This document shows, piece by piece, positions 45,929 to 54,362 of a stretch of DNA of 64,000 nt. How positions within the stretch are numbered: position 1 is the first letter of the stretch; every line of letters begins with the position of its first letter. Below the pieces are notes generated by a model, which searched no databases, had not been told where the DNA came from, and saw nothing but the letters and a program-made list of their open reading frames with translations. The translations under genes and the position numbers were made by a program. Origin of the DNA: Rhodosorus marinus CCMP1338 (taxonomy: Eukaryota; Plantae; Rhodophyta); assembly GCA_029953675.1 (NCBI GenBank), contig JAMWBK010000010.1, forward strand, positions 1,240,001-1,304,000, written 5' to 3'.

Positions 45929-46572
45929 TCAAGATTCCTCCTTCTTCGTCTCCTTCTTTGTCTCAGTCGTTGCCGCTTCGGCTGCGGGTGTCTTAGTCTC
46001 CTCTTCGGACAATTCCTTCTTGGAATCAGAGTCCTTCTGCTCTGCAATTTCTTTGTCGGCCTGTTCAAGGGACTCCTGCATTGCATCCTGGAACTCGGAG
46101 CTCGCCTTCTTCACACTCCCAGCGACAGAACCAAGATTTTTACCCAGCTCGCTTATCTGCAATCATCAATGAATCAGCAGCGCTCGTGTTAGAATTCAGA
46201 TCTGCTTTCAAAACTGGTAAGTAAGAAATCACAGACACTGCCTACTGCCACGATCGCGAGTCGCTCAATCGGCAGATGGAAGACCATTGCACCGGACAGA
46301 GGACAAGAGCATAGGTAGATCGATCAAGCATTTCTGAGATATTTTACCTTGTTAGGCCCAAAAATCAAGGCAGTCACACCACCGATCACCAAGAGTTCAG
46401 GAAATCCAAGGCCGAACAGGCCCATGCTGGGCACCGTTGCCAGACGCGCTCGGGGCTGCTGCTTTAAAGCCGGAACGTTTCCGGCAACAAACACACTCCT
46501 CGAGCTCCCATAGCTCACAGAACTAACTCCTACCCTTCCATACCCAGTCACTAATCCTCCAACAAACGCCAT
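45929..46572 (-). CDS. tatA: Plastid twin-arginine translocase TatA/Tha4, 2 exons
   Basis: MAFVGG.. transit peptide; MGLFGLGFPELLVIGGVTALIFGPNK|ISELGKNLGSVAGSVKKASSEF; acidic tail. Confidence 0.9.
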
Positions 46573-48067
46573 GACTCCCCTCCACAACCCTCAGGAAATA
46601 CCACCCGCAAAAAACAAACCCTTCCCTCCCCCCCCCCCCACACCACCAAAAAAAACACAATATATTACTCCCAAAATCCCAACAAATTCAGATACAACTA
46701 AGATCTTAGTCTGTAAAATTTATACACTCTCTTCTCACTCTCTTCTCACTCTCTTCCCCAGCGTCACCCTCAAAGCCCCCCTTCCTCAAAACTAATCCAT
46801 TCCCCTTCAAGTAGGTTTTCGATTTCACATCATCATCAAAAAGCAATCTAAGCAAAAAGAACCAAAACCATCCCAACTGTTCCCTCCTCTTCCCACCCTC
46901 CCCCTTCCCCTCTCTCTCTTTCTTCGTTTAGAACTGACCATTTCAACTCAAAATCTACTCCCCTAAAGTAATTCACGAGTTACAATTATCTATATCTAAA
47001 ACCCCCTACATATATATTAGTTTATTGTAGTTTTTTAATTTATATATGAAGAATCAAGATGAATAAGCTATTTTATTAAATAATTCATTTCTAATAAAAG
47101 GTTTAATCTAAATTAAAATGATATACGATTTAATTATTGTATTTAATATGATATTTTATTATGTTTATATATAATAATTTTGTATGTATATTTTAGAGGG
47201 GTTGTTGTCTACGTGTGTTTAGGAAGATGGCGAAAGTTGAAGGGGTGGGTTGTATTTTTCGAAATGGACGCGGTTGGTCGTGGAGTGGAAGATAATTGAG
47301 AGAGGGGGTGGGGGAGGAGGGGGCAAAGGAGCGCTGTGGAATTGAAACAGTGGAATGGGTAGAATGGGATACTGGATGGAGGAGGGACACCGATCCCCTT
47401 CCTTCCAGAGCTGATGAGGAATGGAAACATGAAGATGATCGTGCAGACCACCGGCGAGGTTTTTCTTTTTCTTTCCCTCGTGATATACATATTTTTTGTT
47501 CTGTTTTAATGAGAAGATCGATCTTCACATCCTATGCAGTCTTCAGGTGGACGGCGATTACCTCGGATTCGGGAGAACCGCTTTTGGATAGAACGCATTT
47601 GTATTTGAGTCGGGTTTTTTAGAAGTAGATGTATAGGTAGTTTTAGTTGTTGAGTTATCGTATCGACTACGGTCTGACGTGTTTTGAAGAAGGGCTTACC
47701 TGATTCCTATCGCTTCCATGTAGATTGTCGCGAGATACGGCTCGGTTCGGAGTTGCCCAATGCAGCTTTTCTCTTCTCGATTCAAATGGGAATAAGATCT
47801 CCTGACCGATCGACTCAGAAGTTTCTGCTTGATAGTCACGTTTCAGTCATGCCCGTAAGTTCCATGTTGGGTCGATGCCCGACGTCCTTGAACACCAACC
47901 GTCTCGTTAGTATCAGTCGTACAGAGGATGCATTGGTTTTCACTGAGGGAGGTGCTGGTGGATCGCAGCTCTATGAAGCTGAGCTTGAGAGTTTTTGGCC
48001 TTGAAAAGGTGTTAATCTGGTCATCTGTGAAGGTCTTGTTGAGTGTATTGGTATGAGGAGGACGACA

Positions 48068-50860
48068 ATGATCGCTGGGTTTCTAAATTCAGCTGTTGTC
48101 GATCGGCAATCGCGACATGGAATCCACAGTTGCACGCGTAGGGTGCGTTCCAAGTCAACTTCCGCGCAGGGTTATCGTCGCCGCTCAGAGGTTGTGATGC
48201 TCGCTGGCTCTGAAGCGGCTGTACTTGAGCCAGATGGCTTAGCAACTGGTGAGGCCGAGCCGGATGAGCCGAAGCGACCGCGAGCATGGAAGAATGTCCT
48301 GCTTGGATTATGCTTCGGTTTTATCGCGGGCATGATGGGTGCTTTAGCAGGTCTAGGAGGTGGTGTGATACTCATCCCTCTTATGACCGGCGTGCTTGGT
48401 ATAAGCCAACATGTCGCTCATGGTGCATCGCTCGTTGCCGTTGCATTCACTGCATCTGTTGGTGCAGCTTCTTACGCACTGAAAGGGGGCATTGTCAGAG
48501 TATCTACTGCGCTATTGATCAGTACTCTTGCAGTGGTAACAGCGAGAATTTCTTCCCAATTCGCCCAAGCAGTGAAGTCTGAAAACCTGAAATGGTGGGC
48601 GGCGCAGGGCCTAGCTAACATTCCTTGCTGGACATGGAAGCATAAGACCTTTCGCATGCTCACGAGTACATCCGCTCTGTAATTTAGGTACTTTGCGCAA
48701 TACTTGGTGTTCGCTTCGCTTCTACTCCTGGTTCAACCACTTTTTCAGCAGCTGCAGTTGTTCGGCGGCGTTCAAATGGAAGGGATGGATCTAAAAGTTC
48801 AAAATGGTTTCATCACCACCCTGCTTGGACTTGTCACTGGAACCGTCACAGGTCTCGTAGGCGTAGGTGAGAGTTGTGCATCAACAGAAGCCTTTCGAAA
48901 TCCTGAAAGATTTCAGATCATTGTTATCGAGCCAAGCCTGACCATCGCTTCCTGTACTGACGTTTGCCTGAAGGCGGAGGCACGATCATGGTGCCGGGAA
49001 TGACGATATTATTGGGTTTTGCACAGAAAACGGCGCAAGGAACAGCTCTTCTGGCCTCCATCGCTCCATCCATAGTATCGGCCACCACGTACATGGCATC
49101 CGGAAACGTCGTGCCTTCCCTGCTTTATGGAATCCTCCCTGGTGTTTCTGTTGGGTCGCTCGTTGGAGGTGAGGATCTTCAGCGGTGATCATCTTGTAGT
49201 TCTCTCATTTGTGGCTCAAACGTGTTCCGATTTCTTTTTTGGTTATGCCCCAAACCAGCGAACATCGCTGTCCGGTCCCAGGATGGTTTCTTACGGCTGT
49301 TCTGCGCTTCCTTGCTTCTCCTCTCGGGTAGGTGTAAAAAGCTCATCACAACCCCCAACCAAAAGCATGTCAAACCCGCTCGTCTCATAGATCACAACTT
49401 TCCTGTTCCGCTTTTGACAGGCTTGCGCACGCTACTTTCCACGAAAAGACCTGTTCAGACAGCCGAGGAAGAAGAGGGTAAGCGGATGGGGTTGCATTAG
49501 TCTCGTCCAGCTTTTCTGCCTTAAGAAAGTGCATGATTTGCTTACTTCATATTCGTTCGGTTATTGCAGATAACGAGATCCTGAAACCTAGCAAGAAGGT
49601 ACCAGAAGAGGGTTTCGTGACTAGCTCAAGATGTAAACTTCACTACAAGTACCTCAACCAAGGGGTCAAGGGAAAAAATCCACTGGTATTGCTGCACATG
49701 GCCCCCAGGAGCATGGACGAATTCAAAGAGTTCGTTGAGGAGATGGCAAATAATCGCGCCTGGAAGAGGTGCGGTGAGGGACCAGCAAGAGTATTTCTAT
49801 GAGTGTGAGTCTCACAATCACGTTTGTATCGACGCCATATGTTGTTGTGTTTCAGGCCGGTGATCCTCTTCGATCTACCAGGGTATGGGATTTCTGATCG
49901 GTTGAAAGATATTCCAATGAAGCGCTTAGCGGATGAAATCCTGCGCGGTTTACGAAGCCTGGGCATCAGGAGCAAAGTTGATGTTTTCGGTCATCTGCTT
50001 GGGTATGCACTTGCTGCGCGACAACGTTGTTTTGGATTTGCCACTCACTACCTATGGGCTTACAATGTTCCGTTATCGTCGCTGTGAATGCTTCAGAGCA
50101 CATGTGGCTATGTCCATGGCTAGTAGGAAGCCAAAACGGGTGAGAAGACTTGCTCTGGCTGATCCTATTTATCTCACTCCAGAGACCAGAGAGATGGTTG
50201 CGGGTTGGGCAAAAGGAGTGCCGAAGCCAAAGGTAATCAGCACAGATATGTTGCAGTAGGTCTTACGCGAGGATACCAACTCACACGACGATTCCTTCTC
50301 AATCGAATTAGATCGATGAGAATGGACAATTCCTCGCAGACGTTTGGAACAAGAGGTCCCACTTTGTGTCTCCGGATCTCAACTACAGGTGTGTTATGGA
50401 TGAACTGCGGGCCGCTGATACAGAAGAGAGTTCTTCCTTTTCGGTAGGTTTCATATCTTGGAGTTTTCGATACTCGTACTGCAGTGACTAGCCATACTTG
50501 TATTGAGCAGTGCTTCTGGCTCGTGATGTGTACAGGTTTCGAAGACTCCTATTGAGGACGTCTTGCCCAAAGTTAAAGCTCCAAGCCTAGTACTTTGGTC
50601 TTTAGGAGTGGTTGGATTATTTGACAGCTTCGGTTGGAAGATCGGAGAACACCGAGCGTTGGTAGGCACACACAGCTACTCCGTACGCGCTTTGCCTCAG
50701 TGGTCGCTGGTGATTCACTCTTCGTTTGTCTTCGAACTGATAGGTCGAAACAGGGCTACCTAAAGCTGACGTCATAGAGATAGCCGACGCGAATATTGAC
50801 GGCTTGTGCACTCAAACCAGCGCCTACTCGGATCCAGTGTTTGAGTACCTCGAATCCTGA
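48068..50860 (+). CDS. Plastid-targeted TauE/SafE (DUF81) permease, probably fused in frame to a C-terminal alpha/beta-hydrolase-fold domain
   Basis: Two TauE half-repeats (GALAGLGGGVILIP..AHGASL; GLVGVGGGTIMVP..AQGTAL). A phase-1 GTAAGC..TTGCAG intron (49478-49569) joins EEEE-G|AT-NEIL to LLHMAPRS..FDLPGYGISD..GHLLG..LALADP..KAPSLVLW..EYLES*. Confidence 0.8.
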
Positions 50861-51078: not shown

Positions 51079-53038
51079 TCACGGATTTGTCGTTGCCTGC
51101 CTCTTTTTTGCAAGTTGCTTCCACATCTCAGCTTCACTCAGCTCCTCCACCTCCTCCGCTTCCAGGTCTACGCGGATAGTTTTCAGCTTCTTACTTAAGG
51201 CTGTTGGAACTGCGGCAGCGATATAGGTTCCTTCAGCCAAGTACTGTTCGTATTCTATTGCTCCTTGGGTGTAGATTTCGTTCATAATGTCTCCCCGATC
51301 ATACGGAACAATTACTTCCACGTCGGTCATGAGCTCCGTAAGGACGAGACCAATCTCCGCTACGAGGTTTTCCAATCCTGAGGATTCGGGAAGGTTTGCT
51401 AAGGTTCAAACTGAAATACCTGAAAACCAATTTCATCAGTATTCACGAACCTTGTTTTTCCTTCGCCGACACTGCGATAGTATGCTCTCTTTCCACGGCA
51501 GCCAGCGATACATCTTCAAGTGACTCCTCCACCAGATCAAGCTTGTTCCACACGGTGATTGTTGGTTTATGTCCAGCGCCTAAGTCCTCAAGCACGGAAT
51601 CGACAGTCTCCTCGTGGGCTTCTCTCATAGGGTTCGAATAGTCGACGACATGGATGACGACATCCGCCTCCACGACCTCCTCCAAAGTGGCTCGGAATGC
51701 CGCGATCAGCTGCGTTGGCAGTTTTTGAATGAATCCCACAGTATCTGTACTTCGCACGGAACAAATCGTAGTTAGTACAATAAAGTAGCGCCGAAAAACT
51801 GCGGATTCGTCGAAAATCAACGCACCCGTTATAAGAACCTCTGGGTGAACGGCCATCTCCGGTAACTGTGCACGACGAGTGGTTGGATCCAACGTCGCAA
51901 AAAGCATGTCTTCTGCGAAAATTGTGGACGTTGTGAGCGCATTCACCAATGTGCTTTTTCCGGCATTCGTATATCCAACAACACTGACAGTTGGTATATC
52001 CATCTTCTTTCTAGAGTTACGTTGCCTCTTCCGATGAGCCCTGTGCGTTAGAAAGGTGGTCCCAACGTAACACTTTAGAACATCGGAAGGAAATCGGAAA
52101 TGCAATAGCCAATGAGGACCATGGACAATTCTGTTTGCATACCGAACGGATTCCAATGTTCTTCTAAGTGCCGAAATCTTCTCATTAATTATTCGCCTGC
52201 GAAAGCACAAAAAAATTGAGCTTGAGCGTCGTTACCCATCTTCAGATGTCCGACAAACTCCTGTCACCTCACCTGTCTGATTCAAGCTGGGTTTCTCCCG
52301 GCCCTCGCAACCCCACACCACCCTGCCCAGATTGTCTTTCCAGATGGGTCCACAGCCTGGTCAACCGCGGCAATCTGTATTGGTACAGGGCCAGCTCCAC
52401 CTGCAGCTGACCCTCGCGTGTCCGTGCGTGCTGAGCGAAAATATCGAGAATGAGGGCGGTTCTGTCCAACACTTTGATGCCTGGAAAAAGTCCGAATTTA
52501 GCCCCCGTCATTGGTACGTGGCACTGAAAGCTACGAAAAATGCCTTTTTCCTATCCTTCGCCTTACCTGCTTGTTCTCCTCCGAACGCTCTTTCCAGAGT
52601 GCGTTGCTGCGCGGGGGAAAGCTCATCGTCCAGCACGCACGTTTTCGCTCCAGTCGCAGCCATCGCCGTTTTCACTTCTCTGACTTTTCCGGAACCGATA
52701 TAAGTTGAAGTAACCGGAGCGCTCAACTTTTGAGTGTTAGACCCAACCACCTCCATCCCAGCGGTTTCCGCCAACTGTCCCAACTCCTCAAGAGACTCAT
52801 CAATCGAGAACATGGACCGATCTCTTGGAAAGTCGACCCCTACCAAATAACACTTCTCCGTGGGCTGAGTTTCCCGTCTCATATCCTCTTCTTCCTTGGT
52901 ACCATAGCCCATCAGAACACACCTCCTTCTCTCCCATTTTACGACCCGGCATTCCGCAGAATCAACATCCAACGAAGTCGAAGACCCTCGTCTGACTGGG
53001 CACCAACCCAGACCACCAACAAAACAAACACCAGACAT
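51079..53038 (-). CDS. hflX: Plastid GTPase HflX, multi-exon
   Basis: [94 protein letters not shown]; transit-like N-terminus. Confidence 0.95.
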
Positions 53039-54362
53039 TCTAACCAAGCAAGACAGAACTAAACAAAACAAGCACTCTCTACAATTCCAAATCACCTCCA
53101 CAATCCCTTCGCTCCGTGCAACAGAAAACTCATTCTGTTCAACCCCCGAAGTATACAGATAACCTAACCCCCAACCAAAACGACTACCGAACAACCTCTT
53201 CGCACTCAGAACGATTATGTAGGAAGATATTCTTATCTAATACAGCTCCGTTTCCTTACAAACCCCTAGAACTTCGCTCGCTTTACCTTCCAACGCAACC
53301 CATCCCAACGCTAGGTCCTCACCATCCCCATTAATGGTAAGCAATCGAGGATTTCAGAAAGGTATCTCATGTGATCGGACTATTTGTGAATATGAATCAG
53401 GGAGTATAAAAACTTCAAATTCATATTCATAAAATATCCGATCTTACTTATTTCATAAAACTTAGAGCAGTTTCTTGTGTTAATGTGAATTATATATTTT
53501 CTTGTGGGAGCTATCGGAGATGACTGAGAGTTGTACGTCTTGACGTCCGACAATGGATGGATGAGACAAGCGCGTTTGCCGTCTTGACGTTTTTCAGGAA
53601 TGTAGTTTCCACGTCATGATGTATGACGCCTTTTGACATGATAGGTGTTGGGATGTTTGAACTTTTTGCGTCGAGACGTATCACAGAGACGGGGTTCGCA
53701 GCGGATCGTATTTTTGCGTTTGCTGTCCTGATGTTTGAAGTGGTGCAGGCGGTTGGAAGGAGTTTCCATGCCATGATTGATGACTCTTAGAAACGGTATG
53801 GGATTCTTCTGCTGGAGTTGGAGGTGTAGAAGAGCTGACAAGGAGAACCTTGGACTCCTTGCGCACATCGCAGCGGGCTGGATGTCGAGCTCAGCAGATA
53901 TTGTCATGTGACGGTGGGGATTCCTGCCTAGTCGTTTTACAACTTGAGGACGCGCTCTGTGGGCGAGCGTACGAAACATAAGAGTCAGAGACAGATATGC
54001 AGTGACGGGAGGACGGATCTACATACGGAAGGTTTGCGGTGGGGGCCGCTAGTCGTCTGGGAAATCCTGATACGCCAGCTGGGCGCAATGGGCCATACTT
54101 GCTCCGCGATTACCGCAAGTCATCTGGGACAAAACAAACCTACAGAAACTGTCAGCGAATTCGATCCCATTACTAACCGCTACAGAACGTAATGGATACC
54201 GAGTGGAACTTCGCTAGCCGGCTCTGTATACTTGTTTTGCCTCCAAACGACTTGGAGTTCACTGATCGCCGAGCCAGCGCTTGCCGTCCTAGAAAAGAGG
54301 GAAAGCCTCCCTCCTCTGAAAGCCTAGTTGTCTCTTGAGGACAAACCGGAACCACGCTCGAA

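Follow-up and report, generated by a model that had tools for sequence, protein, structure and literature searches.

In the red alga Rhodosorus marinus, one spliced nuclear gene joins a TauE/SafE permease to an alpha/beta-hydrolase-fold domain that appears catalytically dead

In a 64,000-nucleotide stretch of DNA from the red alga Rhodosorus marinus CCMP1338 (GenBank assembly GCA_029953675.1, contig JAMWBK010000010.1, positions 1,240,001 to 1,304,000 of the forward strand; hereafter the window), the forward-strand gene NDN08_004112 encodes a TauE/SafE permease and an alpha/beta-hydrolase-fold domain within one protein. The gene is nuclear, spliced and red-algal (class Stylonematophyceae), and a single mRNA specifies the four-part product, which consists of an N-terminal extension, the permease, an acidic linker and the hydrolase-fold domain. 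The fused model is not itself new to the databases, since the product is identical to the GenBank protein KAJ8901908.1, and each domain is unremarkable taken singly. The novelty lies in the joint TauE and alpha/beta-hydrolase-fold architecture, which is very rare, and in the recognition of the C-terminal domain as a conserved pseudo-enzyme belonging to an unnamed clade that lacks a nucleophile. The parts of the gene, numbered from the first letter of the window, are listed below.

48068-50860, forward strand: whole coding span of the fused gene (NDN08_004112), 11 exons and 10 introns, product KAJ8901908.1
48068-48594, 48688-48866, 48974-49168, 49259-49327 and 49421-49477, forward strand: exons 1-5
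49570-49768, 49856-50002, 50097-50232, 50312-50443, 50536-50661 and 50744-50860, forward strand: exons 6-11
48068-48283, forward strand: N-terminal extension of residues 1-72, probably a plastid transit peptide (from its composition, a predicted local distance difference test score (pLDDT) below 50, and Phe5)
48284-49443, forward strand: TauE/SafE (TSUP) permease core, residues 73-331, exons 1-5 (PF01925; AlphaFold model)
49444-49607, forward strand: acidic linker, residues 332-355, KRPVQTAEEEEDNEILKPSKKVPE, split by intron 5 (low pLDDT, low conservation)
49478-49569, forward strand: intron 5, the junction intron, 92 nucleotides, phase 1, GTAAGC...TTGCAG (spliced out in P0001 and P0025)
49608-50857, forward strand: alpha/beta-hydrolase-fold domain, residues 356-627, exons 6-11, apparently without a catalytic triad (PF00561; domain model; Foldseek)
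49995-49997, forward strand: Leu456 codon CTG, at the nucleophile elbow (G-H-L-L-G-A) between beta5 and helix C
50623-50625, forward strand: Asp577 codon GAC, at the catalytic-acid position, conserved
50792-50794, forward strand: Asn606 codon AAT, at the catalytic-His position, in the loop that follows the final core strand (..IEIADAN..)

After splicing, the coding sequence is open from the ATG at 48068 to the TGA at 50858-50860, and its 1884 nucleotides give 627 residues that match, residue for residue, the hypothetical protein KAJ8901908.1 (also UniRef A0AAV8UHC5), encoded on a 1.69-Mb contig of the nuclear assembly that PMC10250338 presents for R. marinus CCMP1338. All 10 introns are of the GT..AG type and uniform in size (79-107 nucleotides), and the reading frames around the gene are short broken pieces between GT..AG intervals, in eukaryotic nuclear style, within a window of ~49% G+C. 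Both domains are recognized by Pfam above the gathering cut-offs: TauE (PF01925) at residues 82-326 (E 5.9e-36; 124.8 bits versus 32.6) and Abhydrolase_1 (PF00561) at residues 379-500 (E 5.9e-13; 49.5 bits versus 25.8). The original prediction, made from the letters of the window, was that one spliced gene joins a TauE/SafE permease to an alpha/beta-hydrolase-fold domain, and this is borne out by the gene model, the Pfam matches, the identity to KAJ8901908.1, orthologues derived from complementary DNA (cDNA), and the same fusion in a second genus. An in-frame ATG at 48053-48055 (forward strand) lies 15 nucleotides upstream of the annotated start and adds five residues (MRRTTMIAGF..); the transcript-derived open reading frames (ORFs) of the sister strains all begin at MIAGF rather than at this upstream codon.

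The two domains are joined across intron 5, for which a donor at 49478 (G/GTAAGC) and an acceptor ending at 49569 (TTGCAG/A) had been proposed, and both sites are found there. If the intron is kept, the permease frame ends at an in-frame TAG at 49498-49500 (..EEEGKRMGLH, then stop). The hydrolase part has, as had also been noted, no start of its own outside the intron, the sole upstream ATG being that at 49533, which lies 33 nucleotides past the stop, inside intron 5 and in the frame of the hydrolase exons. That the parts can be joined in frame is, by itself, weak support, because 12 different GT..AG pairs near the junction would likewise connect them into a frame free of stops. The junction is more than chance because independent cDNA-derived proteins of other strains carry exactly the same one. 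These are the MMETSP orthologues P0001 (628 residues; ..AEEEDDNEILK.., ..TAEEEDDNEILKPSKK.., ..TKRPVQTAEEEDDNEILKPSKK..) and P0025 (627 residues; ..AEEVDDNEILK.., ..TAEEVDDNEILKPSKK.., ..AEEVDDNEILKPSKK..), which come from other Rhodosorus strains, are 89-91% identical to the product described here, and have intron 5 removed. Transcripts that read across 49477/49570 are therefore seen in two other Rhodosorus strains.

Transcript assemblies also contain forms in which intron 5 is kept. Among the sister-strain Trinity isoforms, P0021 and P0015 end in ..AEEVDGKWLGVP followed by the stop, P0024 and P0026 begin at the ATG within intron 5 (MCIMNVLMFVRSCGYADNEILK..), and the unspliced TauE tail has about the same length as the tail of the stand-alone Cyanidioschyzon orthologue. 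From these forms it could be argued that there are two separate products, a TauE protein ending in ..KRMGLH at 49500 and a hydrolase-fold protein with its own start, and that the fused model is an artefact of annotation or assembly. This explanation merits almost no credence. A 5' end proper to the hydrolase exons is lacking, because one and the same intron-5-retaining transcript (Transcript_35638) yielded both ORFs, P0021 and P0026; this is not the pattern of transcripts ending at 49500 beside a separate transcription start site for the hydrolase. The retention of intron 5 looks like ordinary partial splicing rather than a gene boundary, because other introns are retained as well (intron 1 in P0017, intron 2 in P0029, intron 8 in P0002, and intron 10 in P0019 and P0016). 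Fully spliced ORFs of 627 and 628 residues occur in two other strains, the fused ORF recurs, on a contig free of introns, in a second genus with only 40% identity, and a start codon for the hydrolase part outside intron 5 is absent.

The same isoforms could instead reflect a regulated switch, in which retention of intron 5 would produce a plain TauE permease ending at the stop at 49500 and its removal the fused form. The retained-intron product would be a complete TauE protein whose tail looks natural, and isoforms of this kind were indeed assembled; however, retention is not confined to intron 5, and the stop at 49500 lies more than 50 nucleotides upstream of later exon junctions, a position that exposes the transcript to decay in most eukaryotes. 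A switch of this kind is accordingly considered very unlikely, and a single fused product is the preferred reading. As a separate observation, the sister-strain Trinity assembly contains at least 13 isoforms of the fused gene (P0002, P0015-P0029) that variously retain introns 1, 2, 5, 8 or 10, and so many isoforms suggest that this data set contains much unspliced RNA or some carry-over of genomic DNA.

A second genus carries the same architecture. The orthologue P0003 (668 residues, 40% identical) is encoded by one uninterrupted ORF on the cDNA contig L001, which is 3778 nucleotides long and intronless. The HflX protein encoded next to it on L001 is 100% identical to that of EukProt EP00190, 'Bangiopsis sp. 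CCMP1999' (MMETSP1475), which is also labelled Purpureofilum apyrenoidigerum; Purpureofilum/Bangiopsis CCMP1999 belongs to the Rhodosorus family and represents a different genus. Between Rhodosorus and Purpureofilum, identity amounts to 45% in the TauE permease, 40% in the hydrolase-fold domain, 24% in the N-terminal extension, and 4% in the linker. When the full 627-residue protein was searched with phmmer against 1.84 billion representative sequences (standing for ~15 billion proteins), only two clusters covered both domains, namely the Rhodosorus cluster and P0003; the next matches were TauE-only proteins or fragments (at most 171 bits) or hydrolase-fold-only proteins. Five long matches spanning several stretches (P0091, P0099, P0112, P0172, P0178) were considered as further fusions and rejected, as they are tandem alpha/beta-fold proteins without TauE. 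A literature search combining TauE with chloroplast, Rhodophyta or fusion did not find a paper describing a TauE-hydrolase-fold architecture. As far as the searched data reach, the fusion appears confined to the Stylonematophyceae, in two red-algal genera, and its divergence indicates that it is old within this class, because the two genera have diverged to 40% identity since it arose.

With regard to its origin, a TauE gene in the Stylonematophyceae probably joined a downstream gene of the nucleophile-less hydrolase-fold clade, and intron 5 would then derive from the former stop codon and the spacer. A fusion of two neighboring genes fits the data because intron 5 falls within the linker, which is not conserved, and the read-through product would be a TauE protein of normal length; for the second genus, the data bearing on such an origin by intronization are limited to cDNA. 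The suggestion that bacterial homologues of the two parts might be operon neighbors was not upheld: ORFs around 80 bacterial loci of the closest prokaryotic TauE subgroup, collected with the bacterial representative P0053 as the query and covering 3 kb on each side, include no member of the hydrolase-fold clade, and for that TauE subgroup at least there is thus no bacterial operon precedent.

The hydrolase-fold domain was modeled separately with AlphaFold on a cleaned alignment of 16 sequences, and the domain-only model (pLDDT 82.6; predicted template modeling score (pTM) 0.85) has a canonical sheet/helix core with a lid. It replaces the hydrolase half of the full-length AlphaFold model, which was discarded for Foldseek matches with root-mean-square deviations of 14-27 Å, a poor result that arose because the mixed alignment had misplaced the hydrolase-only rows. 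Foldseek searches of the domain model against the PDB return esterases, haloperoxidases, lactonases and dehalogenases (template modeling (TM) scores of 0.59-0.74, most between 0.6 and 0.7; Foldseek probability 1.00; identity of at most 19%). In phmmer alignments to PDB sequences, F-G-H-L-L-G-A-H is matched with G-N-S-M-G-G-H (6i8w), G-H-S-M-G-G-Y (7dq9) and G-H-D-R-G-A-R (3qyj), placing Leu456 opposite the nucleophile Ser of the first two and the Asp of the third, and the domain model positions Leu456 between strand beta5 (450-455) and helix C (457-468). All four fused sequences, including P0001, P0025 and P0003, have Leu at the elbow. The catalytic-His position is occupied by Asn606 in every Rhodosorus strain and by His in Purpureofilum, while the conserved Asp577, aligned with the acid of the relatives, follows a five-residue insertion and sits at a helix end in the model. 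The oxyanion 'HG' motif is replaced by H-M-A-P-R-S. By its residues and predicted structure the domain is judged catalytically dead (nucleophile replaced by Leu, and His by Asn in Rhodosorus), and it appears to be under constraint, being nearly as conserved between the genera as the permease. Of the 'binding or processing' role that had been ascribed to it, processing is disfavored because both the nucleophile and the His of the triad are replaced, whereas binding is retained in the reading set out below.

It may nevertheless be argued that the C-terminal domain is an active enzyme that processes the transported metabolite at one face of the membrane by a non-canonical mechanism (general-base, lyase-like, or cofactor-independent). 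The predicted structure preserves the fold, the lid and a probable pocket, the domain as a whole is highly conserved, Asp577, His385, His455, Arg389 and Ser390 are conserved between the genera, and the G-x-H-T-G elbow conserved in bacterial relatives could hold a functional His. However, Leu has no capacity to serve as a nucleophile, the algal clade has lost even the elbow His that the bacterial relatives have, every Rhodosorus strain has Asn in place of the triad His, and no curated enzyme family comes near its cut-off (best NCBIfam match 61.7 bits versus 307). An active enzyme is therefore regarded as unlikely, and a non-catalytic domain is preferred.

The nearest relatives of the domain are the stand-alone proteins P0119, P0128, P0138 and P0170, which are 27-29% identical to it in an alignment of the domain alone and 33-36% identical over matched stretches. 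Together with the domain, these four proteins share the motif LHM[AS]PRSx[DE]E, a Leu at the nucleophile position (GSLMG, GNLFG), and an insertion after beta7 (..FDxFG..). Across the whole set of relatives (P0113, P0119, P0128, P0138, P0140, P0170, P0099, P0112), identities are 27-31% for the domain-only alignment and 31-38% over matched stretches, the motif widens to LH[MQ]xPRSx[DE]E with G-x-[HL]-x-G at the elbow, and Leu or His, but in no case Ser, Asp or Cys, stands at the nucleophile position; the elbow is G-x-H-T-G in the tandem forms and in relatives of bacterial appearance. The altered oxyanion motif, too, is common to the domain and this set. These shared features indicate that the domain belongs to an unnamed superfamily clade without a Ser, Asp or Cys nucleophile, whose algal branch would lack the elbow His too. 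Among the relatives checked, none was fused to TauE, and they are covered by no curated NCBIfam model, none having come near its cut-off, the scores of the relatives being no better than that of the domain, which NCBIfam likewise could not name. A word-index homologue search with the hydrolase domain alone returned no homologues and missed the domain's own orthologues as well, which marks a limit of the index and is not biological evidence. A scan of metagenome contigs with the hydrolase-domain alignment gave 232 pattern matches, among which there were 0 relatives.

Several of these proteins have features of their own. P0113, P0140, P0091, P0099, P0112 and P0172 combine the G-x-H-T-G elbow with LH[QA]SPxS in place of HGxP, and some of them consist of two or three such domains in tandem; for a nucleophile position, the His of these P0113-type proteins is unusual. 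P0119 has an N-terminal extension of ~115 residues with a weak chromo-like Pfam match (PF23327, below the cut-off) and a W-rich C-terminal tail.

The permease core matches PF01925 over nearly its full length (model positions 3-236 of 237), and it is made up of two homologous halves, each with a GxGGG..P motif (GLGGGVILIP at 95-104 and GVGGGTIMVP at 234-243) that is invariant between the genera. AlphaFold predicts 5+5 helices with pLDDT mostly above 90 (first half: 73-94, 99-110, 114-140, 145-168 and 171-200; second half: 211-233, 238-249, 253-277, 283-306 and 309-331), and in each half the short second helix stands behind the GxGGG motif. No TauE structure was detected by a sequence search of the PDB. 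By Foldseek, the best membrane match of residues 73-331 is BacA/UppP, the undecaprenyl-pyrophosphate phosphatase (6fmt, TM 0.57; 5oon, TM 0.44; both target-normalized); BacA is an interdigitated inverted-repeat membrane protein. Basic residues flank the core at both ends (KRPRAWK before helix 1; R326, K332 and R333 after helix 10), the loops hold few charges and their count is weakly informative for topology, and the number of membrane passes in the model is even whether the short helices cross or re-enter. The soluble domain is accordingly expected on the same side as the mature N-terminus, because of the even number of passes and the basic flanks at both ends, and it would most likely face the stroma if the protein resides in the plastid inner envelope or the thylakoid. 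The permease may be expected, by analogy with its family, to move a small anion; sulfite or a small organosulfonate would be suggested by the family name only.

Because the gene is nuclear and has spliceosomal introns, the original placement of the protein 'in the plastid' can only mean that it is plastid-targeted. The extension begins MIAGFLNS.., with Phe at position 5, and its first 45 residues are basic and rich in hydroxylated side chains, with 9 K/R, 2 D/E and 9 S/T. Residues 1-72 have pLDDT below 50, are predicted to be disordered, and are missing from bacterial homologues, and G4, F5 and S8 are invariant between the genera despite the 24% identity of the extension. Rhodophyte transit peptides carry a motif based on Phe (or another bulky aromatic residue) at the very N-terminus (PMC7038456). 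As lineage controls, the TatA/Tha4 protein encoded in the window starts with MAFVGG and the Purpureofilum HflX with MAFLPL, and algal TauE-only relatives with N-terminal extensions start with MLAFTL, MTFVSV and MHLAAFV. From these features, a plastid location of the fused protein is judged quite likely.

Alternatively, the extension could be another type of signal, directing the protein to mitochondria or the endomembrane system. This is suggested by the imperfect Phe motif (position 5) and by the TauE relatives sampled, the closest prokaryotic ones being from Thermus, Nitrospirota, Deltaproteobacteria and Peptococcaceae and not visibly from cyanobacteria, for which reason no argument from plastid ancestry can be built on them. 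On the other side, the extension is composed like a transit peptide and lacks the hydrophobic core of a signal peptide, Gly4, Phe5 and Ser8 are conserved between the genera, other algal TauE relatives have F-type N-termini, and, as a weak hint, the gene adjoins a plastid-type HflX gene in both genera. A non-plastid destination is for these reasons thought unlikely, and plastid targeting is retained in what follows.

Taken together, the features of the protein somewhat favor a TSUP/TauE anion permease of a plastid membrane that carries a non-catalytic domain for binding, regulation or docking. In such a protein, the N-terminal extension would serve as a plastid transit peptide and bring the protein to a plastid membrane, where the TSUP/TauE part would act as a secondary permease for a small anion. 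The dead alpha/beta-fold domain, tethered to the last helix by the flexible acidic linker, would bind a partner protein or, in the pocket of the former active site, a small ligand, and binding would in turn regulate or localize transport. A more specific and rather improbable version holds that the nucleophile-less domain is a small-molecule receptor gating or tuning the permease (a 'transceptor'), with the stand-alone Leu-type algal relatives acting as soluble partners of TauE/TSUP proteins; if true, the fusion would be a Rosetta stone for an unrecognized regulator-transporter pair and would offer the first regulatory handle for TSUP, a large orphan family.

A number of observations weigh against this picture. 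The Phe lies at position 5, not 3, and starting at the in-frame ATG at 48053 would put five further residues in front of it; the closest prokaryotic TauE relatives do not point to a cyanobacterial source; and the substrates of the TSUP family are poorly known and diverse (PMC5840216). The full-length AlphaFold model has a pTM of 0.50 and gives unreliable relative placement of the two domains, with linker residues 334-350 at pLDDT below 50. Loss of the triad may still leave room for non-canonical chemistry, Asp577 and His385/His455 being conserved.

Comparison with known systems helps to place the fused protein. With the TauE/SafE or TSUP family (PF01925, TC 2.A.102; e.g., Cupriavidus necator TauE) it shares the full Pfam model and the two GxGGG..P halves, whereas typical members have 240-340 residues and no soluble domain, and the fused protein adds a C-terminal alpha/beta-fold domain of ~270 residues. 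The red alga Cyanidioschyzon merolae has a stand-alone TauE homologue (BAM80456.1), whose P0004 cluster is 33-39% identical to the permease of the fused protein. Sulfate transporters of the SulP/SLC26 type have a C-terminal STAS domain, with a regulatory or biogenesis role that is not catalytic; a 2006 study by Shibagaki and Grossman is cited in the reference list of PMC5840216. The likeness here is a functional analogy between anion permeases with a soluble C-terminal domain, and homology is not claimed, as both the membrane folds and the soluble folds are unrelated. The gibberellin receptor GID1, the NDRG proteins and the neuroligins are non-catalytic alpha/beta-hydrolase folds in which triad residues are replaced and which bind ligands or proteins. 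The domain described here resembles them in having a canonical fold with a replaced triad; it differs in that no specific sequence relationship to them was found, the Foldseek matches in the PDB being generic enzymes with at most 19% identity.

A precedent in design is MamO of magnetotactic bacteria, in which an inactive trypsin-like protease domain is fused to TauE and has been repurposed for metal binding (PMC4794232). In both cases TauE is joined to a hydrolase-type domain that has lost catalysis (in Rhodosorus, as judged from its residues), and the TauE halves are similar (NF040961, E 1.9e-9), although in MamO the protease is N-terminal, so that the order is reversed, the fold is that of trypsin rather than of alpha/beta-hydrolases, and both organism and compartment differ. 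Identity with MamO itself was rejected, as NF040961 scores 36.4 bits against a cut-off of 800, matches the TauE part only, and is accompanied by no trypsin-like domain.

Permeases of the TSUP/TauE family are nearly ubiquitous, plants and algae included; hardly any substrates and no regulators have been assigned to them, and a search by sequence finds no solved structure. A fusion kept under selection ties one such permease to the clade of dead alpha/beta folds and so gives a testable lead on control or binding; it would also join MamO as another, independent example in which a TauE permease has taken up a hydrolase-type domain that no longer works as an enzyme. Its practical reach is modest, as the fusion has so far been seen in one small red-algal class.

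The genes on either side of the fusion were also inspected. A two-exon gene of the TatA/Tha4 type lies ~1.5 kb upstream, at 45929-46571 on the reverse strand; its product starts with MAFVGGLVTGYG.., contains ..GLFGLGFPELLVIGGVTALIFGPNK/.., and has an amphipathic K/E-rich tail, and its start is a textbook Phe-type transit peptide of red algae. On the other side, the gene for a plastid-type HflX GTPase (NDN08_004113, 51097-53194, reverse strand) faces the fused gene tail-to-tail. This arrangement recurs on the Purpureofilum/Bangiopsis CCMP1999 contig (L001 2155-3627, reverse strand), and since the convergent pair occurs in both genera, the microsynteny has been kept through divergence to 40% identity for the TauE fusion and 74% for HflX. 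The GenBank model of HflX (P0195) lacks a targeting extension, the frame in the window is open upstream of it (~52900-53050, reverse strand), and the Purpureofilum orthologue starts with MAFLPLASPP.., from which the public HflX model is probably truncated at its 5' end.

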